Shown here: positions 1,021 through 50,100 of the stretch, piece by piece
How the letters are laid out: each line of letters opens with the position of its first letter
Numbering within the stretch: position 1 is the stretch's first letter
Notes under the pieces: generated by a model
The model's input: the letters and a program-made list of their open reading frames with translations, nothing else
The model's database searches: none
Told to the model about the DNA's origin: nothing
Made by a program: the position numbers and the translations under genes
Assembly (NCBI GenBank): GCA_950097015.1
Contig: CATNEN010000001.1
Location: 2,666,001-2,730,000, forward strand
DNA length: 64,000 bases
From: Macrostomum hystrix
Lineage: Eukaryota > Animalia > Platyhelminthes
Direction of reading: 5' to 3'

Positions 1021-4000
1021 GTCAACAGAGGGACAGCAAGGGCATGGGCTTCTGCGGTGCGGTACTGCTAGTTCTGTCCTACACGCTGATCTTTGTCACA
1101 TTTCCGTTCTCCTTGTGTCTCTGCATCAAGGTTCGTACGCTGTTTACCACTGGACGGACCACTAGAAGAAGAAGGACGGGAATCTTTGTTTCTTAGAAAA
1201 TTAATTAAAGGCAGATTTTCATGGAAAAAATGTTCTAGCGAGATATTAACTTTTTACCTTTTTTAAATTAAAATTTTGATTAATTTTTTGGAAGCAGATC
1301 CAATGCCCCTCGTTTAATATATCTTGCAAAGCATTAATTAATTGGTTCAAGAAATTTTAAAAACTTCACTCATGAATAGATCAAGATTTTCATTTTCTTT
1401 TTATTTATTTATCATGAAGCACAATATAGCAACCAATCAGACATAAACTTAGCCTACTTGACTTACTTAGCTTAATTGATTAAAAAGTGACTGTAAAATT
1501 AAGCTAGTCACGAGATAGCTTTTTACTAGCTATTGTGCTTCGTGATGAATAATCGAAAATAAAACAAAGATCTATTGTTCATAAATTTGTTGAAGCGCGT
1601 ACGTGTATATTAACAGTAGAACTACCAAGGGGGATTCCCCCTGACCATTTTTGTGCTGCACCCATCTGGAACAACGCGCGTGCACGTGTATTTCATACAC
1701 CCTATACACGAATTAACACATTATCTAGACGGATTTGCTGGAGCTTCAAGGGCTACAACAGGTTGAGATAGGCCACTATGGACACCATGACGCGAATTTC
1801 TCCAATTTCGCTGATCAAGCCAAAATATTTGGCGCAGCTCAACCACTGTACACCATCGCCTAGTCTATCAACCAATCAGTCACCACCCTTGGCTTGGTAG
1901 TCCTAATGTTAAAAGAGCAGCGCCAGATCTGCTTCCAAAATATTCATCAACATTTTAATGTAAAAAGTGAAGATTTCCTATCTCTCTAGTGCAATTTTCA
2001 GAAAAATCTGCCTTAAAGAATTTTTTCAAGAAACGAAGTGTCCTTCGTCTTTTAGCAGTCCTTGTGTTTACTATTGCAAAGATTTCTTCACCTGCACGTT
2101 AGGAATATAATGAATTGCCTGTTTTACAGCTAGGCGTATCACTTTCTTCGTTCTAGGTCGTAGCCGAATATGAGCGTACGGTGATCTTTCGTCTGGGCCG
2201 CATTCTGGAAGGCGGCGCCAAAGGACCAGGCCTCTTCTTCATCGTGCCCTGCATGGATATGATTCGCAAGGTGGACCTGCGCACTGTCACCTTTGATGTT
2301 CCGCCTCAGGAGGTAATTATCCTTCAAGAAGCCTAGAAGCTAAGAAGCAAGGTTGTAGAGTTGTGACTGAAAATTTCCTTGGCTTCAATATGGCCTTAGC
2401 TTGGAATTTCAAACAATATTTCGGCTATAAAAGACAGGCTATACGGCCGTACAGGTTACGGCCTGTGTCAACAAAGTCACATACCAGTTGTTGGCATTTG
2501 CCAAACCAAAGGATAAATCTGTTTATGAGTGAAAGTAAAAATTAAGACCCTGACCCACTTAAACTATGAATTCAGGCTACAGACTACTTATACAGTCGGT
2601 ACGAATCGATTCAATATTAAACGTGCAGAATGGCATGATGTAGATGTGATGTACTTGCCGTCTCAATGCCTACCAGACGGGCAGATTGACAGACGCGACA
2701 GATTTTGTGGAAAATTTTCTCACTGCCGTCTTCCATGATTTTTTACTCGAAGCCCTCTTCCAGTTTAGTTCCCTACTCATTTTGCCCGTAGGCGTAAGAC
2801 TGGGGACAAAGTATGAGCTGAAAGTGGACGGCATTCGTGACGACTGACGACTTAGTGCGAATGAGGAAGGGAGATGAGAAGTAGGACGAGGGGCAATCGA
2901 GTAGAAAAGGAAATTACCGTAGGAGAGAGTTGAAGAGAGAGAGAAATGGAAAGGGAGTTGATGGGACCGGGCGCGTCGTTGGCGTTACAGACGGACTGGA
3001 AGAAATAGACGTTTGCCCGAAAGGAGCTGCATGGGCCTCGGCGACTTGACGAAGGAATATTTCCCTTACAAAAAGTAGAAGCCTCTTCTCCTTCTGTCTC
3101 TATGGCGAACTCGGAATTAGATTTATTTGATTGGATGCGTCGGATTCCGCGCTGTGTATGCATGTGTGAATGCGTACAGCAGCAATGGCTCATTGTGTGT
3201 TGACAAGGCGAGGCCGAAACACTGGACTAGACGCTGAAATGTACACCAGGTTGTACATTTCAGCTTCCAGTTTATCTGCTATTTTGATTGATTCGGCTGG
3301 TTAGTGGTTTTCGTTCAACTACAATTATTCAAGTGCCGTTCAAAAAGTTTCTGAAGAAAGGTTTTAATTTCACGTCTCTAAATCAGCCCATAAACAGGTG
3401 AAGGAAAACATTTTACAACTCAGTGGCAAAGGGTTGACCGAGAAACCAGAGATACTCACCAAGCATATGCATGCAAGTTATTTGAATGCTTGAAAATTCT
3501 ACTTTCAAGATACTCGTACGTAGCATCTGCTCATAGACCTATTTGAAACTGTTACTTTACAGTAGAATTTCGCCTATTTATTGATAAAAACAAAAAAGCA
3601 CAATGAAAAAATGATCACCCATTGTAGACTACGTATTTTATTCATCTATTAAGATTTATTTTTTAATAAAAATCCACAATACAAAGCGTTCTAAAAATAT
3701 TAAAACTGTAGGTGCTGACGAAGGACTCTGTGACTGTGGCTGTAGACGCAGTCGTCTACTATCGCATTTACAACCCGGTCATCGCTGTCACCAATGTTGA
3801 AGACGCCGACAGATCAACCCGTCTTCTGGCTGCCACCACTCTGCGCAATGTTCTAGGCACCAAAAACCTGTCTGAGATTCTATCCGAGAGGGAGAGCATT
3901 AGTAATATGATGCAGGTAAGAAAAAATTTATTGAGAAACGTCGTATTTGCACCAATAAAATTTAGCGCTAAGAATCTAGTCAGTATATAAAATTCTCCGT

Positions 4001-7000
4001 CACTCAATCACTCTCTTTGCCCTGAGTTAAACTAAACTAAAGACTAAATCCTTGGCGGATTGAAACGGCAGTGCAATTTGCCTTTCTTAACTTGTCACAT
4101 AGGCCATTAGTGAATAGCTGACAAGCAAATCCGTGTTGAGCAGGGTTCTCAAGGTCTGAGCCAAGGTAAATACTCAAAGAGGTGATAATGCTCCTTTAAA
4201 CTAGTTTAGGTAGAATAAACAATCTTATGCAAAAGTGCAGGTAATCAATATATAATGAAATACCTCGTTTGCAGTTTTGCACCTACTTAAACCAAAAAAA
4301 TCTGGTTGCATCACGGCTTTACAACGAGCATCGATATCAATGCTCGTAGTTTTGAAATAATCGGAACTTGCTTAGAAAACCTAATTCTAATATTCAATGG
4401 TGGATACGCATATGATATTTAAAGCAATTCGATATTGGTCCATAAGAACTCACATAAAAGCAATGTAACACGGCCTGAAACCAAGTTATTCTGCTCAATA
4501 ATTCAAAGCAGGCGTCCAGTGGTTCAGGTTGCGTGTCGGACAATCAAAATTTGCTGTCATTCTAGTTCAAATCCCGTGGACTCGCTGGCTAAAGCTAATT
4601 CCGTAATCCACAGGCCTTCAGACACCACACGCTCTCAGATTGAGATTGAGACTGAATTCACTTAGATTGCTTATGTAAGCACGAACAGCTCTGCTCATAG
4701 TGCAGCTCAGTGCAGCTCAATTTCTAATCCGACCTGCTTGTGCAGCGCTTCAGAACTTTTCAGACGTCACTCCCTTGTTCACTCGTCTCTTCCTCACTCA
4801 ATCTTTTTAACATAGATACGGAGCGTGCAAAACGTAAAGTGCTTTTCAGATTGACACGTTGAACTTTATAAATTTTACCTTGTCTTTTTAGTCCGGTAGT
4901 GCTTTCAGCAAAATATTTAATGCACACTAAGCGCAGAGTATTCGGGTTCAACGTATCAAACTTCTAGAGAAGAAACATCCCTGAGCATTTTTTATCAAGC
5001 GTAGCAATATTTAGTAACTCCATGACCCAAATGCCTCCTTTGAGCTCGGGAGCCCAGCTATTAATTAATAAACTAGCCAATCTGAATGCCACCACGACTT
5101 AGAAATTCGCTTGACCGGAGCCTCTGCTGATTTTGGGCTGGGGAAAAATTTCCTGTGATAAAATAGGGACGTATATCACCACTGCGTGGTGTGCATCCGG
5201 GCATGCTGATCTGCATTCACAATCTTCGCCATTAAATTAGCCACTGAGATACAGACATAAAGAAAGAGTATTTTAAAGCCTATCTCTCATTTACGCTCGT
5301 ATTTAGTTTATTGTATCGATTCTCTCAAGATTTTGTATGAATGCCTCGTCTGCATTCGTCTGAAATAAGACGCTGTTTTTTTAAATTGCACCGCTGCAAC
5401 CATTGTTTGCGAACAGTGCCAATGAAATCCTATCATCTACTGCCGTTAAGCGTTTTTCCCATTATCTTTTTTTCACAGATTTTATATGCAGCTTCTTATG
5501 CATTTGCTTGAGACAGTGAATAGCCAATGCAATTCACTTTTCGTTTCGTCACGATGAACGAAATCTCTAATAAAGAGATTGTGGTCTAGGAGTCATTTGG
5601 AGAACCGATTGGGATTACGTAATTCTCGAAATCGAATTTCTTTCTGTCACTCTAATGAGCACTTCGTGCCTCGACAAATCTTTCTTGACTACTTTATTCC
5701 CACTTCATCAAGTGAACTATGGTTGGTGCGAGGATCTGGTCTAGAATTCATAGGAAGAAAGGGAGAATTAAAGAAATAAAGGTACCTTGAATTAGTAAGG
5801 AAATTACTTTGCCAAAAGTGGCAGTAAGATATTTGGCGGCCGCAGTGCTTGCCTCTGGTTGACTAAGGGGCAGCTGTCGCAAGATGTCTGCCCAAAAGGG
5901 ATTGACTGTGAACCGGCTCTCTGATTTGGACAGCAATGATAGGGAGACAGTTCGAGAGAGGAAATCAGATGCAGCAGAGCCAAGCACAAGTGCTGGGTTG
6001 ATGATCCGCAGATTTCGTCTGGGATTATACAGGCCAAGCTGCAGGGATAGAAGGCCGGAGGTGAGTCCTCTTCATCAGTGGCTCGAGAAACCTGACGAGG
6101 ATTTGATGATTATTTTCTATTATTTTCTCTCTCTGCGCACAGCAAACACGAGTCTCACTGCCTTGCTAAGGGCCTTAATGCCGATCTCGAGTTTGCTTCA
6201 GTAGAAACCATTCCGCTGCTAAGAGTTCTGAGCAAATCTATTTTTGCTATTTTAAAAACATTTTTACCTGCATGAAATCAACAAGCAAGCAATCGGACAG
6301 GAAATTAAAATAGAAAAATAAATGAATGACATAAAACAGAAGCCTGACATAAAGTAGCAGTTTTATTGAAACCATGGCACGGCTTATTGAACAGGGCAGA
6401 AAAAAATGAGAAGAAAAAGAAATCTGAGAAGTAAAACGATTGCACTCGACAAAATTAAAGAGAACAAGAACAGCTGAGAGCAATAGGCTCTTTCAACTTG
6501 AGACATTTTGAATGCGAGGCTTATGCTGCTAAACTATTACCTGAAAATTGGAGCCGGATTATACATTTAGCCCAAGGGCTTATACCTCTCATTCTATGGG
6601 ATTTTCCAGCTTAATTGCTTCTAAATGTACTTTTCAGGATTTAGCCCTTATTAAATCCAGTGTTAAGCAAAAGCGGTGACACAAATGCTGGAAATTTTGA
6701 AGACATCCTTACAGGTATTAACTTTCCCAACAATTTCCTTCATTTCAGAACATGCTGGACGACGCTACCGATCCGTGGGGTGTGAAAGTGGAACGCGTGG
6801 AAGTGTGAGTGACAGTAGTTTCTTGTATTTTCTTTTCAATTCACCGCCATCTTTTCTTATTATAATCATAATAATCCGGCAGAATTCACCGAGTTGAACA
6901 TCATATGAATCTTTTTCGAAACGAATTTTAACATGTTTGACTGTCTCAAAATTTGCACAGCTCTTTGTTTTAACTATTTTATAAATATACCTGTCTACTA

Positions 7001-43217: not shown

Positions 43218-46200
43218 GTTAGTGTCTTCGGGTTATGTGGTTACCGTAGGGGCCATGTGCTGTCTGATGGATTTCTAGTATAAACGTGGCTTTTGGTGTC
43301 GCGGGAGGCCTGCTGGCAAGTACCTGAATCCGAAAGTGCCGCATAACTTTGATCAGTCTGACTTAGGTGAGGACCTGTTAGGGTGGCTGGGATCCGGAAT
43401 GAGTGTAACGACACGCGTGCCCGCGCCGCAAAGCTGTGCATAGTCTCTTGTTCGATCCTAAGGATGGGCTAGAATCTGGTCGGCACGGCTCTTTTAGTGT
43501 AAGGGGAGTCTTGGTTGGGCTAGTCTTAACCGAGCGAGGTCCCAGGCTTATGGATCCTGGATTTCACGGTCTCGTCAATTGCGAGGGAGAGCCCCTGGCA
43601 ATGCAGCCGGGAACCGATGACTCCGCTTTGCTCACTGCATCGCAGTGATTATTTATTACGGCCTAGAAACTTCTCCCTTATCGTTTTTTTGCGTTTAGGT
43701 GACGCAAGCTCGTCGTGCTCTTCTTTCTTCTTCCACGACCCCAGGTCGTGCCCTGACCATTGCTCAACCCCGCCTCCAATCTCTCCCCCATCGTCGCAGT
43801 TTAGCGGCAAACCCCCTTTTTCTAAGCAAAACCTTCATACCTCTTTTGGCTGAAAATGTCCGACCAGGGAGATGAGGTCGTCGAGGCAATCGGAACCCCC
43901 CGTCCAATTGGAGGTAGGGCTGTCTCCGCGGAGAGGTGTCAGGAATGGCGGCCCCTGTCCGCAACTGTGGCCACTGCCGCGCAGAAAGCAGACCATTGGA
44001 AGGCTCACCAGCACCTCCTTGCAATGTCGCATTTTTCCCAGTTTGTAAGGTCCGACTTGCAATTGTTCAGTCGTTCAGAGCATCCCCCGGTGGCAAGACA
44101 CTCGGTCGCCACCCAGACGGAAAGCGAACGTTCGCAGGTTGCCAAGCCTGCGAACAACTTTCGTATCCCGGTAGAGCCCTTTGACCGAGATCGTTCCGAC
44201 ATTGCCTCCTGGATGCTCCGGCTGGAGGCTAAGTTTTAGTTCGAGGAGGTCGAAGATGACAGGGCAAAGAACGTGATCTGCTATGGTCTGCTGCCGGAGG
44301 AGATGCAGTTGGAATGTCTTTTGACTGTCGACTTCGATGCACAATTCAGACACTTTCGGGGCAAGCTGCTAGACGGCTGCCAAGACTCCAGGTTGCTGGG
44401 CATAAGAGGCGCACGGTGGAACGCCAGCAACCACGTCCAGGAGAGACTCCCGAAGTGTTTTTAGTTCGGCTGAGGAAGCTCGTTGAGTGGGCTTGCGCTG
44501 AACAGCCAGAAGTCTGGCGGCAGAAGGAGCTCAAAAGGCTCTATCTGCAGAATGGGCACTTCGACTGGAAGTTTGCCGTCGAGGCTTTCTTAACGAAGGA
44601 CTGGACCCCAGAGGACACAGTGCTTGAGCAGAGGAGAGCTGAGGAGGCCAACCGCGTCGCGTACGAGATTGAGAGCGAGCGGCAGAGCTCAGCTTCGGAG
44701 AACACCTCGGTGTACCAGAGCTGCGCATCTCTGGTGGGCAGTCCACCTCAAGCCTCCACCTCCACCTCCACCTCGGTTAGGGCAGTAAACGCAGAGCACA
44801 ACTGCGACCCCGCGGGATTCCGCAACGGAGTGGACAAGGTGGAGGCGGGACACCAGCTGACGGCTGAGCAGAGAGCGCAGCTGGAGGACTTGCTGCGAGC
44901 CAACGCCGATCTTTTCGCCGATAAGGAGGAGGACTTGACTGTTACGGACGTGGTACGACACGAGATCACGCTGACCGATCCCCGGCCCGTGAAGTCGGCG
45001 CCACGGAGGATCCATCAGGACTACCTTGAGGAGGTACAGCAGATGGACAGGGACTGGCTGGAGACCGGGAAGGTCAGTCGCTCTTCCAGTCCGTACTGTT
45101 CGCCGCTGGTGTTGGTGAAGAAGAAGGGTGGCTCCCTGCGAGTTTGCATCGACTACCGTGAGCTCAACGAGCGAAGTGTGTCGGAGGTCACGCCGTTGCC
45201 GCGCATCGACGAGCTGCTGGCATCCTTGCACGGGTCGTCCTATTTCACTACCCTAGACCTAGACCACGCAGCGGGTACCACCAGTACAGCAGTTGAGTCA
45301 GGAGCAGCCGGACGGGACGGAGAGAGTCCTGGCTTATGGCAGCAAGGTCTTGACCGCTTCGCAGCGTAACTACTGCGTCACCAAGCTGGAAATGCTTAGC
45401 CTAGTCTACTTCACCAGGAAGTAACGATACTACTTACTGGGCCGCCATTTCTTTGTCCGAACCGACCACAGTTCTCTCCAGTGGCTGAAGAGTTTTAAGG
45501 AGCCCACTGGCATGTATGCTCGCTGGGAGCAGCACTTGTCGCTGTATGAATTCGATCTGGAGTACCGGAAGGGCAGCCTCCATACCAACGCCGACGCGTT
45601 GAGTCGTCGGCCCAGGCAGAGGCACGGCGATTGCCCCACTTGTCGCCCGCTGGAACCTAACAGTGAAGAGGAGAGCGAGGACGAAAGAATGGTGGTCAAC
45701 GCTGTCGTTGCACAGGCGAAAATGGACCCGCCACTGCTGCGCGAGGAGCTGTTGGCTTAGCAGGCTGCCGAAACACTGATCCGTTGGGTGACACAGGCGA
45801 AGGCCAACGGCCTGGCCGCCCCTGAACCAGCTACAGTCCCGAATTTGTCCGCCTCTGAGAAGGTCGCGCTGAAAAATATAGTGCCTTACTGCGATCTCCT
45901 AAGAGTAGAGGAGCAGCTGCTTAAGATCCAAGTGCACGCTCCTCCCCGGCCGTCGCTGTGGGTGCTTCCGGCGAGCCTCGACGAACAGGCCTTCCGGTCG
46001 TGTCACAACGGGAATTTAGCTGGGCACTTTGGACGTCAGAAGACCATCGCGCGCATCGCACAGCGGTTCTGGCAGCCAGTACTCCGCGCATCGATGGAAA
46101 GACTGTGCGCGCAATGTCACGCCTGCCTGTGTAGCAAAAACGGCCGCGGAACCCAGGCCCCGCCGCAGGAATAGGAGAAGAGCCCTAAGTAATCAAGAAT

Positions 46201-46768
46201 TCACCTAGATTTCGTCGGTCCCCTTTGCCGAGGAAGTCAGAGCATCCTCACCATCGTGGACAGTTACTCGGGCTGGATCGAGGCCTTTCCTGTAGCCAGT
46301 CAGACGGCTAAAGCAGTCACGCGAATTCTAGCCACGGAATTCGTTTCAAGGTTTGGAGTGCCCGACTGGATCCATAGTGATCAGGGAGTGCAGTTCGAAT
46401 CGCGCCACTTTCGCGACTTCTGTCGGAAGCTGGGCATTCGCAAGTCCAGAACCACGCCCTACCACCCACAAGGCAATGGCATGGCGGAGTCTCAGCATCG
46501 CATCTTGAAAACCTTGCTGACCGTGGCTGTGGGCCGCCATCCGGAATAGTGGAAGGCTCACCTGGCTACGTGTCTAGCCGCCACGAGGTCTGCCAAGCAC
46601 TCTTTGACGGGATTCTCACCGCTTTTCCTGGTGTACGGGCAAGAAGCCAGGCTGCCAGTGGAAGTGGCTTTTGGCGTGCCGGCCGAGGCACCCGCACCAC
46701 ACCAGTATGCGGAGCAGCTCCTACATAACATGGAAGAAGCGCAGGTGCAGCTGCAGGAGCAAAAGTAG
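43218..46768 (+). mobile_element. Decayed Ty3/Gypsy LTR retrotransposon (gag-like, partial RT, RNase H, integrase)
   Basis: SPYCSPLVLVKKKGGSLRVCIDYRELN..LPRIDELL..YFTTLDL (RT N-part); AYGSK..QRNYCVT..RTDHSSLQWL..EYRKGSLHTNADALSR (RNase H); HNGNLAGHFG..CHAC (IN zinc finger); VDSYSGWIEAFP, HSDQGVQF, TTPYHPQGNGMAE (IN core). Many stops; LTR boundary uncertain. Confidence 0.92.
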
Positions 46769-46970
46769 AGGTTTTCACTTCCATCCGAGTCATCACTGAA
46801 GAGACGAACCCGGCAGTTCTTTTCATCCCCTGGTGTCTGCCAAAAGACGATCAAGCTGTTGCTGTTGCACTTGCTGATGACCCCGAGCCACAGCGACTAG
46901 CAACCCTCTGCTTCGTTGGCATGAGTTTATCAGCCAGCATCCGTTACGACCAGCATGGTGACAGAGTCGT

Positions 46971-47036
46971 GTCGGTCAACGGAGGCCCCCTTCCCGAGGG
47001 GACCGATGTCGCAGCTTTACTGCGCAAAGTGCCTCC
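46971..47036 (+). ncRNA. HDV/CPEB3-like self-cleaving ribozyme
   Basis: P1 GTCGGTC/GACCGAT (G1.U wobble); P2 GGAGGC-C/GTGCCTCC; P3 CCC/GGG; L3 TTCCCGA; J1/4 GT; P4 CGCAG/CTGCG; J4/2 CAAA with catalytic C at 47025. Predicted cleavage is at the insertion junction. Confidence 0.85.
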
Positions 47037-47153
47037 ACCCACCGGATTTCGCCTCGGCGCCCGCACCCAGACCTTCGGGTTTTCGGGTGGGCAGCAGACC
47101 AACCCCGACGAGTCTCGCCGCCGTCTTCTACTGTCGGGGGACATTGAGCAAAA
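46971..47153 (+). mobile_element. Short non-LTR retroposon insertion (Ingi/L1Tc-like 5' end) with a 22-bp TSD
   Basis: ACCAGCATGGTGACAGAGTCGT is duplicated at 46949-46970 and 47154-47175. The insert starts with an HDV-like ribozyme and ends with codons LLLSGDIEQ plus a short A run. Confidence 0.85.
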
Positions 47154-50100
47154 ACCAGCATGGTGACAGAGTCGTCGGCTATGATAAACATTCTGCTAGT
47201 GACCTTGAGCAGCAACTTCAGAGACCCGTAAATGAAGCAGTTGTTGCTGTTCTCCGTGGAATCTGGAGCAACTGGAAGCAGCCGATTGCATACTATCAAG
47301 TTCATAGAACCCTCGGTCAGCTTCGGTTCAAGTCTGCGATAGACTTGTTGTCTGAATTCGATCAGACTTGTTGTCTGAACCGACTGCGGGTTGTCGCACT
47401 GGTTGTCGACCAAGAAACGACACAATGGGCCTATCTCAGCAAACTGGTAAGCAAAACTTTATTTAATAAATTGATATTAGAATATATTGGGTTTTAATAG
47501 CTGAAATGCAGTACAGAAAGTTTGCCAATCTTCAAAACAGCAATAAATTCAAACATTGCGTTTGCGACCAAACGCAATATTATAGCCCTCCATATTTTCA
47601 TATATTTAGGTAACCCCTGCGGCTCCATTTCTAAACCACCATGTGACGCAAGGGCCCGTATTTGTCATCATTGACGTTCCGCACTGCCTGAAAATTGCGC
47701 GCAACGCCCTCATGAAGAACAACATCATTTTCGACGGAGACAAGCAAGCAAGATGGCAAGACCTGGTTGAATTCTACTAAAGGGACAGCAGGACGAAAGG
47801 AAGTCGCTTGAGTGATGCGCACTTCAGCCTCCAATTGGGCCAGAAAATGAAGGTCTCCCTCGCCGCTCAGATCTTTAGTCATTCAGTTTCCAGTGGAATC
47901 AAGACACTCGTACATCACCACGAACTGCCCATCGATGCCCTGCAGACAGCGGATTTCGTGAAGAGAGTCAATGATGCATTCGACTTGCTGAATTCGGCGC
48001 ACATTCTTGACAAAGGATTTAAGCAGCCGATCACGCAAAGTTCGCTTTCAGAGAAGATTGACGAGTTGCGCAGCGTCGAAGTGTCGCGAAAATCGTGAGT
48101 TATTATTAGCCAATCCTGTTCTCTGTTCACCCGTGTGGTAATATATTTTTTCTTACCCGTTTATCTGCCAGCCCCGCCCTTTCTATCTATTATCGATTTT
48201 CCCCCCGTGTCCCTTTCATCTCTGTCTCCCTCCAGTCTTAGCGTCAGCACAAACTTTGTTTTCCTTCCCCCTGCGCGCGTTATCGCCTGTTAACCCCATT
48301 GTACATCCCCCCATGGTTTTCATACCCTCATTTGTCTCTCCTCGCTGTCGACCCCCCTTTCTGCCCTAGCCTTTCAAATAATATAATATTTAGAAAGGCC
48401 CGAGGCAAGGCCGACATGTTTTGTTTTTACTGACCTATCGACTCAAAGTATTAACAGACTTCATTTTATCTACACGAAGCCTTCATCGGAAGCTGGCAAT
48501 TCTTTCCTTGCAGCGGAAAGTCGCTAAAAGCAACTATGAAATTCAAGGAAGCGTGGATCCTGTCGACTTCTGCAATACGGCAGATCAGCACAGCGTTGAT
48601 TCAGGACGAGCACTACGAGTTCGTGTTCACGTGAAGACTATCACAGGATCACGTTGAGGTAAGTTGCCTTCTTATTGGGAATCATATATTTAATAAATAT
48701 TGTGATCACAGGCACTAGTTCCAAGAATAAGTGTAGCTATAATTGTCACTCATACTTGTAATATATCATATAATTGAAAAATTACCATATCCGTCGGATT
48801 TGTTTAAAGGCCCGATTTACACTGCCATCAAATGAGCCAAAGTCACATGTCAGATGTACGAGGGAATAAAAATCAACGTACAAATGAAGTTATCACCCGA
48901 GCTTTATTCTCATTTGATGGCAACGAAAATGGACTTTACGAGTATCTTAAGTTGCAATCTAATTTTGAGTAAAATAAATGCGAATTACAGAATCTGTTCT
49001 GCATCATCCGTGGCCGCAACGGCTTCAATGAAAAGCCCGAGATTCAGGCGTTCGTTGGGGCACTGCGATCTGTAGCTGCCAGCGGCCTCTCCCAGCCAGA
49101 TTCTACGGCCAGAAACTGCGAAGACGACGGCTGTGTAGCTGCAGTCACAGCAGACTGTGCAGCTGTTGAACTCGGCAAGAACAGCACGTCTGCAGCGAGT
49201 GATTCAAAGACTGAAGACCAGGTCGATGCGACTACTTCGAAAACCTTGACGCAGCCGGCTTATGATTCATTTATTGAAGAAGCGACGGATTACGTGGGCG
49301 GATTTGTGCTCAAGAGGAGCGGCGTCCTGGAATGCCAGAGCTGCAAGCCGGTTCTGACGGCGGCGAATCTCACTGGAGTCCATCTACGGCATAAGTCGCT
49401 GTCTCACGCCGTCAGCGGCTTAAAACTGCCTTCGCCAACTGCGCTGCAAAGCTTTAACAGAATGGAAGCTATCTTCAGTGCTCGATCAGCAACCTTTATT
49501 GTTATTATCGTACTAAAATAGCCTAAGCGTACTAAGAATCCTAGTAAGGATCTTAGCAAGATTAGTCATTCTTACGCTAATCTTACTAAGAAAATTACTA
49601 AGATTACTATGGGGTGCCGACCTGGGAAGCAAATTCCAGATAAATTCAAATTAATTTATACTTATGTAAACAATAATTCCAGGTTTTCTTACAATTTAGG
49701 CGATTAAAATTTACAAATATACACCTCGTTACATCTGTCACAAAAATGTATAACTAGCAAACATACAAGTAATTAAAGAAATCATGTTTAAACTTGAATT
49801 CTGTATAGAATTAGCATAGACCTACTACAATTTCCAAACAGCCAGCACAATTTCTATTTCAATTGCTACATTATTTTACACTTCGTTATCTTTCTTATAT
49901 TTTACACACACAACTTATGCAAAGTTTTGTAATGCTACAGGTCTATGAAATGAGTCAAAAAACAAAGTTGGAAGGAGACTAAACGGTTGGAAATTTTTGG
50001 TTCTCACTTTGTGTACTTATAAGCTACTTATTGCTTCCGGAATTTTCAGAAAAATTATTATTTTTCATTTCGTCATATATAATTTCTACTTCTACAAGAC

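Follow-up and report, generated by a model that had tools for sequence, protein, structure and literature searches.

An insert in a Macrostomum hystrix transposase gene points to an animal LINE that probably begins with an HDV-like ribozyme and a 2A signal

A 183-bp insert interrupts a P-element-like transposase gene of the flatworm Macrostomum hystrix, in the 64,000-nucleotide stretch of DNA analyzed here (the window; contig CATNEN010000001.1, positions 2,666,001 to 2,730,000 of assembly GCA_950097015.1; coordinates below are those of the window). The present study suggests that this insert is the 5′ end of a long interspersed nuclear element (LINE) with one open reading frame (ORF) for an apurinic/apyrimidinic endonuclease (APE), a reverse transcriptase (RT), and RNase H, ending in an (AAC)n tail, and that the family is, or recently was, active in the genome. 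Specifically, the RNA of this LINE very probably cuts its own front end by means of a ribozyme resembling that of hepatitis delta virus (HDV), downstream of which lie a translated leader and a 2A (StopGo) signal. The copy in the window is probably a dead-on-arrival 5′ end of this ribozyme-headed LINE, produced by aberrant integration.

The insert is flanked by two copies of a 22-mer, ACCAGCATGGTGACAGAGTCGT, that agree at 22/22 positions by direct comparison, just as had been claimed in an earlier note on this DNA made from the sequence alone. In two paralogs of the transposase (L019 and L021, with flanks ~90-94% and 75% identical to those of the window) the 22-mer occurs once and the left flank runs directly into the right flank; as these are empty sites, the 183 bp represent a real insertion with a target-site duplication. 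The actual duplication is probably 20 bp rather than 22, with the remaining AC common to the target motif CGAC and the AAC tail of the element. An own-genome search with the 183-bp insert as query returned 13 matches. Homology to the LINE begins at the first base of the insert, G1, and stops at the internal sequence GAGCAAAA, and the core formed by nt 1-66 is identical to those of two longer copies, L002 and L004.

The best copy of the parent, L014, is an element of ~4047 nt whose frame is open from nt 2 and AUG-less. It has a 63-codon leader ending in RLLLSGDIEQNPG, followed by Exo_endo_phos (PF03372, E = 6e-15), RVT_1 (PF00078, E = 2e-36), and RNase H (PF00075, E = 3e-9) domains and a weak zf-RVT match, and is broken by one frameshift and one stop; the same three Pfam domains stand in the same order on L016. 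The earlier note predicted genomic copies in which NPGP leads into such an ORF, and these were found: past the point where the insert ends, longer copies continue from GGGGACATTGAGCAAAA into TCCCGGACC, that is, from GDIEQ into NPGP, and then into SQADIRILQWNLNGL, so that LLLSGDIEQ-NPGP precedes APE, RT, and RNase H. All 15 of the 15 canonical 3′ ends read GTACGCC(AAC)n, with n usually 5, before the flank. Besides subfamily 1, to which the insert belongs, there are two further subfamilies with the same layout, one (subfamily 2) at 76% DNA identity with GDIESNPGP and the other (subfamily 3) at 63% protein identity with GDVE(P/T)NPGP and intact frames of 1372-1381 amino acids. Thus the 2A motif is complete in full-length relatives (RLLLSGDIEQNPGP, GDIESNPGP, GDVEPNPGP; GDIEQNPGP in L002), its NPG ending at residues 63-66. 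One ORF that carries a 2A close to its N-terminus along with APE, RT, and RNase H is the layout of the Ingi/L1Tc clade; the term "Ingi-like" used in the earlier note holds for this architecture, which is its sole basis. The tail consists of (AAC)n, not of poly(A).

From G1 onward, the insert can be read as a compact HDV-like ribozyme (Table 1). The helices P1, P3, and P4, the loop L3, the joining segment J1/4, and the C of J4/2, all previously proposed, are legible in the sequence and were recovered by a descriptor match at 46971 in the nested double-pseudoknot order P1-P2-P3-L3-P3′-P1′-J1/4-P4-J4/2-P2′. Features expected of HDV-like ribozymes, namely the putative catalytic C of J4/2, a G.U wobble closing P1, and the U...G of L3, are all present. 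The bulge that had been drawn in P2 is unneeded, with C46987 serving as a spacer and GU 47029-47030 lying within J4/2. The shape alone is weak evidence, as a loose descriptor of the pseudoknot topology gave 19 matches on the two strands of the window (128 kb) and is not significant. A strict descriptor (P1 perfect and including the G.U, a minimum of 6 bp in P2, and a compact P4 with 5 bp or more) matched only at 46971 in the window and nowhere in 3.9 Mb of composition-matched random sequence, a zero background that overstates significance because the descriptor was tuned after the candidate had been seen.

Natural copies of the element provide two further lines of evidence. The first, an indirect one, is the position of their 5′ ends, which coincide with the predicted cleavage site: homology begins exactly at G1 in ~14 independent copies of subfamilies 1 and 3. 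Six subfamily-1 copies (the window copy, L002, L004, L005, L008, and L012) start at the G of GTCGGTC, with unrelated upstream DNA in each, and the same start is seen in five young (L055-58, L069) and two decayed (L067, L073) subfamily-3 copies with unrelated flanks; an eighth subfamily-3 copy, the decayed L043, is missing G1 itself. A seventh 5′-complete subfamily-1 copy, L003/L039 (G000:C1:26309696-26313676), carries a 5′ inversion of the twin-priming type, in which nt 1-1125, in reverse complement, adjoin nt 1132-4043 and (AAC)n with an overlap of at most 4 nt. Its inverted arm stops exactly at G1, which argues that the template RNA itself ended there.

The second line of evidence is covariation, which the earlier note had named as a test and which was found in P1, P2, and P4 across the three subfamilies. 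In an alignment of 12 sequences, 9 of them distinct, the four helices were scored with pseudoknot notation over 22 pairs: 98.4% of cells are paired, and 8 pairs have changes on both sides (two in P1, three in P2, and three in P4), position 4 of P1 being G-C, U-A, or C-G. When the 3′ partners were slid by 1-3 columns as a control, pairing fell to 38-52%, with 0-1 compensatory pairs. The C of J4/2, the L3 consensus UUCNCGN (UUCACGU in subfamily 3), and P3 are invariant, save for one P3 pair broken in the decayed L009, and the G1.U wobble occurs in every row of subfamilies 1 and 3.

Several observations weigh against this interpretation or narrow it. The HDV-type models of Rfam (HDV, CPEB3, drz) gave no match at E ≤ 10 with either 2 kb or a 106-nt slice, a weak negative because the models are lineage-specific and unable to encode the pseudoknot; the matches that cmscan did return on these sequences were only chance, snoRNA-like ones and were discarded. 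The nested minimum-free-energy fold of the 66-nt core contains P2, P4, and an extended P3 and is not unusual (z = -1.33), a score that is uninformative because the folding program cannot model pseudoknots. In subfamily 2, no convincing canonical P1 was found: the strand reads GCCUGUGGUC, which amounts to a 3-nt insertion or mismatch (L006, L007, and L009), and upstream of the core homologous to the ribozyme these three near-identical copies have 27-37 additional nt (CTGCTCAACGAGCAACGGGTCGGAGAGACCG...) in common. The ribozyme module is thus not always used as the 5′ end, and subfamily 2 may represent a damaged ribozyme whose 5′ flank was transduced. In subfamily 3, an in-frame AUG lies at codon 30, just past the ribozyme, so that an AUG-less leader is not universal. 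Furthermore, of the subfamily-1 copies at the loci examined, none was fully intact.

The lack of an HDV-type Rfam match would also suit a reading in which transcription starts at the shared 5′ end from a promoter inside the element, the fold being a leader that is structured but not catalytic. There is a precedent for overlap of the two functions, as the first 77 nt of the trypanosome element L1Tc are both promoter and ribozyme (PMC5814959). A promoter, however, would constrain DNA sequence rather than base pairing, whereas the covariation keeps exactly the four HDV-type helices in their pseudoknotted order, and the C of J4/2, the wobble at G1.U, and the U...G in L3 are conserved as well. We therefore regard a promoter without catalysis as unlikely, and hold, judging from sequence comparison, that the module of subfamilies 1 and 3 is very probably an HDV-like ribozyme.

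Table 1. Features of the insert and its surroundings (window coordinates)
Feature	Position	Strand	Evidence or remark
CGAC, family target-site motif	46947..46950	+	Immediately 5′ of the duplicated target
Left copy of 22-bp repeat	46949..46970	+	Exact repeat; probably 20-bp target-site duplication 46951-46970 plus AC; single in L019 and L021
Insert, 183 bp, nt 1-183 of ~4-kb LINE, subfamily 1	46971..47153	+	98% identity to full-length L002/L014
HDV-like ribozyme core (putative)	46971..47036	+	Descriptor match and covariation
P1 GUCGGUC / GACCGAU	46971-46977 / 47001-47007	+	7 bp, G1.U wobble
P2 GGAGGC / GCCUCC	46981-46986 / 47031-47036	+	6 clean pairs
P3 CCC / GGG	46988-46990 / 46998-47000	+	
L3 UUCCCGA	46991-46997	+	
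J1/4 GU	47008-47009	+	
P4 CGCAG-CUUUA-CUGCG	47010-47014 / 47020-47024	+	
J4/2, first base C47025, putative catalytic C	47025	+	C invariant (alignment column 59)
Structured, translated leader between ribozyme and 2A	47037..47115	+	Conserved hairpins, including GACC-UUCG-GGUU at ~47070-47081
Truncated 2A/StopGo codons, RRRLLLSGDIEQ	47116..47151	+	Translation; NPGP of full-length copies missing
Right copy of 22-bp repeat	47154..47175	+	Alternatively, the AC at 47154-47155 may belong to the AAC tail as its final two bases
P-element-like (TNP-like) transposase exon, RNase H N-terminal domain	47153..47440	+	PF21787, E = 1.1e-10
TNP-like GTP-binding insertion domain	47808-48098		PF21788, E = 3.2e-15

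The ribozyme sequence is at the same time the start of the ORF, accounting for its first ~22 codons, and in subfamilies 1 and 2 there is no AUG between the 5′ end and the 2A. The AUG-less frame described previously, running through the insert to RRRLLLSGDIEQ(KP), is present; the 2A of the window copy stops at DIEQ, after which KP is read from the junction and host sequence, and the D(V/I)ExNPGP C-terminus is lacking. Between ribozyme and 2A (47037-47130), an RNAalifold consensus of 9 copies contains three conserved hairpins with 30 pairs, 7 of which have compensatory changes, although this evidence is weak because the region is also coding. One of these had been singled out as a cUUCGg-capped hairpin; the hairpin exists, but its tetraloop is not kept in the other subfamilies, the UUCG loop of subfamily 1 being replaced by a longer stem in subfamily 3. 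It is conceivable, if on balance doubtful, that the uncapped, self-cleaved RNA is translated without an AUG, driven by the fold of ribozyme and leader, and that the 2A serves to discard the leader peptide.

In the parent element, these parts suggest the following cycle. The LINE would be transcribed by read-through or from a start of its own, and its RNA would cleave itself just 5′ of G1, removing upstream host RNA, so that every complete cDNA would end at G1. Translation would begin inside the ribozyme sequence, and StopGo at the final glycine of GDIEQNPG, before the proline, would, to judge from the motif and its position, release the leader from the APE-RT-RNase H protein. New copies would be made by target-primed reverse transcription from the (AAC)n tail at CGAC sites.

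The target motif is apparent from the family as a whole. G1 is preceded by CGAC at a distance of exactly 10 nt in 7/15 copies and of 5-20 nt in 12/15, against a background of 0.005 per position, and wherever both ends were available (L014, L004/L026, L005/L031, L028, L033, and L027) the bases after CGAC are the duplicated target, which indicates that the endonuclease nicks beside CGAC. The modal duplication of the family is 10 bp. The window site, TTACGAC followed by CAGCATGGTGACAGAGTCGT, has the family motif with a 20-bp duplication. This 20-bp target is framed by CGAC (46947-46950) and, as its reverse complement, GTCG (46966-46969); the placement of the second nick at ~20 rather than 10 nt might be due to this second, inverted motif. 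At the 3′ junction, canonical copies pass from GCC(AAC)5 into the duplication, whereas the window copy passes from CAAAA-AC into it, without the 3′ untranslated region (UTR) and with at most 2-3 tail bases kept. Relative to CGAC, a strand-specific motif, the insert has the sense orientation, so its cDNA was made from the first-strand primer and not from a second, twin primer, which rules out a retained inverted twin-priming fragment.

Because the window copy lies at a CGAC site in normal orientation and is missing its 3′ UTR and the greater part of its (AAC)n tail, it probably arose by aberrant integration, via a template jump or internal priming. In this scenario, the family endonuclease would have nicked its usual CGAC site in the transposase gene, and reverse transcription in normal orientation would have copied only nt 183 to 1, the cDNA beginning at the internal CAAAA run (nt 179-183, the 2A codons for Q and N) and running to G1. 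Either the enzyme would have begun at the AAC tail and, via AA microhomology, made a jump of ~3.86 kb onto the A-run, or it would have been primed directly on the internal A-run; the second nick would then have been made 20 nt away, versus the usual ~10. The main rival is a normal full-length insertion that later lost ~3.86 kb at the DNA level, from the internal CAAAA run to the tail with its CAA/AAC repeats. A deletion at AA/CAA microhomology would fit the junction CAAAA-AC, and internal deletions in other copies show 1-3 nt of microhomology. Such a deletion, however, would need an endpoint within the last 2-3 bases of the element and would have to have occurred in a young copy, one with identical repeats and 98% identity to L002. 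In addition, the duplication of 20-22 bp, compared with exactly 10 in 7/15 copies, mildly favors an abnormal integration in the first place. Later deletion therefore retains a real but distinctly smaller share of the probability than aberrant integration.

The earlier note had called the insert a non-autonomous or 3′-truncated retroposon, and of these descriptions 3′-truncated fits. A non-autonomous mini-retroposon mobilized by the LINE would have precedents in NARTc and in the short internally deleted elements (SIDEs) of R2, and the insert does keep the ribozyme 5′ end and sits in a target-site duplication at the family motif. Such elements, however, keep 3′ sequence and exist as several independent copies, whereas the insert lacks the 3′ UTR and the (AAC)n tail found on 15/15 canonical 3′ ends and is a single copy: further copies of this short form, which the earlier note had suggested looking for, were not encountered, as the genome search gave none with its junction and the other matches to nt 125-183 (L002, L003, L008, and L010) all continue into the ORF. 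Internally deleted copies do form a graded series, all keeping G1. In L012, nt 37 is joined to 267 and nt 397 to 2165, and in L005, nt 120 is joined to 952 and nt 1909 to 2890; these junctions have 1-3 nt of microhomology and lack GT-AG, which rules out splicing as their source. In L073 (L073:98-282; G000:C38:17034547-17034731, minus strand), the 5′ 115 nt run straight into the final ~69 nt of the LINE. This old subfamily-3 copy, with decayed ribozyme and leader, has a SIDE-like layout but is single-copy, with another repeat adjoining its 3′ side. Since none of the short forms, that of the window included, has a second copy, they are best seen as accidents rather than as a non-autonomous family, which is a very improbable explanation of the insert.

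The resulting stub consists of ribozyme, leader, and half a 2A and has no function of its own. It cannot move again, because it has neither coding capacity nor a 3′ recognition sequence; its sense orientation means that it would be predicted to cut any transcript of the host transposase gene. The host gene is also frameshifted, because the 183 + 22 = 205 bp added are not a multiple of 3. That the insert lies inside a P-element transposase, as the earlier note stated, was borne out by the Pfam TNP-like domains in the surrounding DNA, and the transposase is itself repetitive (7 own-genome matches). Within its frame, a 16-nt direct repeat, AGACTTGTTGTCTGAA, occurs in two copies 23 nt apart (47341-47379) and could represent a small duplication in tandem. 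Pol remnants of a long terminal repeat retrotransposon (44314-46549), including an integrase core (PF00665, E = 2e-15) at 46256-46549, lie directly upstream of the transposase fragment, which makes the region a pile-up of transposons.

Other loci offer further observations on LINEs of this kind. An unrelated 1.43-kb element is nested in the subfamily-1 copy L004 (L004:1640-3070; G000:C38:29304591-29306021), with a 15-bp duplication of LINE nt 125-139, and a terminus like that of this nested element (TTGACTTAGC.GCAGGG) adjoins a subfamily-2 copy in L011. A more distant LINE family, at 44% amino acid identity (L059, L060, and L071; G000:C2:2240840-2241308 and others), has LLLRAGDVETNPGP, then a Cys-rich CGGC stretch, and then APE. 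GCC-UUCACGU-GGC, with the same L3 as subfamily 3, lies ~150 nt upstream; a convincing P1 was looked for in L059/L060 and not found.

The combination of ribozyme and 2A is itself already known from L1Tc of Trypanosoma cruzi, in which the ribozyme L1TcRz occupies nt 1-77, an in-frame 2A precedes APE-RT-RNase H, and the short element NARTc shares the 5′ end (PMC5814959, PMC3185411). The Macrostomum element resembles L1Tc in its HDV-like ribozyme at nt 1, here predicted to cleave upstream of itself, in its 2A in frame before APE, in its single APE-RT-RNase H ORF, and in having a short derivative that shares only the 5′ end, a likeness of architecture. It differs in its host, a flatworm rather than a kinetoplastid, in its (AAC)n tail, where L1Tc has poly(A) (PMC5814959), and in its target motif, CGAC; moreover, NARTc is abundant, whereas the short form described here is single-copy. 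In animals, 2A signals occur 40-80 amino acids into single-ORF APE-type LINEs of mollusks, echinoderms, cnidarians, and chordates, such as Ingi-1_AC of Aplysia, as well as in members of Rex1, L2, and CR1, directly before APE (PMC3708506). The 2A of the Macrostomum LINE occupies the same position before APE, but the leader that precedes it is encoded by the ribozyme itself; that paper mentions neither ribozymes (0 occurrences) nor flatworms.

For R2 elements, 5′ ends set by a ribozyme, covariation in P1, jumps between templates, and SIDEs with internal deletions are on record (PMC3774820, PMC3414825), and the G of L3 and the C of J4/2 are described as important in their HDV-like ribozymes (PMC3774820). 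In the Macrostomum family, as in R2 and the R2 SIDEs of Drosophila, an HDV-like ribozyme would set the exact 5′ end, P1 shows compensatory changes, and internal deletions and possible template jumps are seen. R2, however, is site-specific in 28S rDNA and uses a restriction-like endonuclease, and its SIDEs retain the 3′ end and spread, neither of which is true of the window copy. In the parasitic flatworm Schistosoma mansoni, the LINE-associated ribozymes are twister variants (PMC8501958). The compact form of the Macrostomum core, with a 7-bp P1, 3-bp P3, 7-nt L3, J1/4 GU, and short P4, is that of CPEB3-type ribozymes, although the CPEB3 and other HDV-type models of Rfam do not match it. The L3 of CPEB3 is UUCACGU, as in subfamily 3.

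In the literature searched, 2A-bearing animal LINEs and ribozyme-headed LINEs are described separately; no paper was found that joins both for a metazoan, that reports HDV-like ribozymes in Macrostomum, or that combines the terms HDV-like, ribosome skipping, and retrotransposon. Our findings extend the 5′ module of the L1Tc type, comprising a candidate self-cleaving ribozyme, a translated leader, and a 2A, from trypanosomes to an animal LINE, on the strength of natural copies: their exact 5′ ends, the covariation among them, and the twin-primed inversion that stops at G1. The stub in the window is a small natural experiment, in that the family enzyme can evidently make a cDNA of the RNA's 5′ end alone at a canonical target, and it has placed a probably active self-cleaving RNA in sense orientation inside the gene of another transposon. 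The 66-nt ribozyme and the 2A are also compact candidate parts for flatworm transgenesis. If the AUG-less translation considered above does occur, the compact module would amount to a naturally occurring animal cassette for expression independent of cap and AUG and would offer a handle on how ribozyme-processed LINE RNAs are translated.

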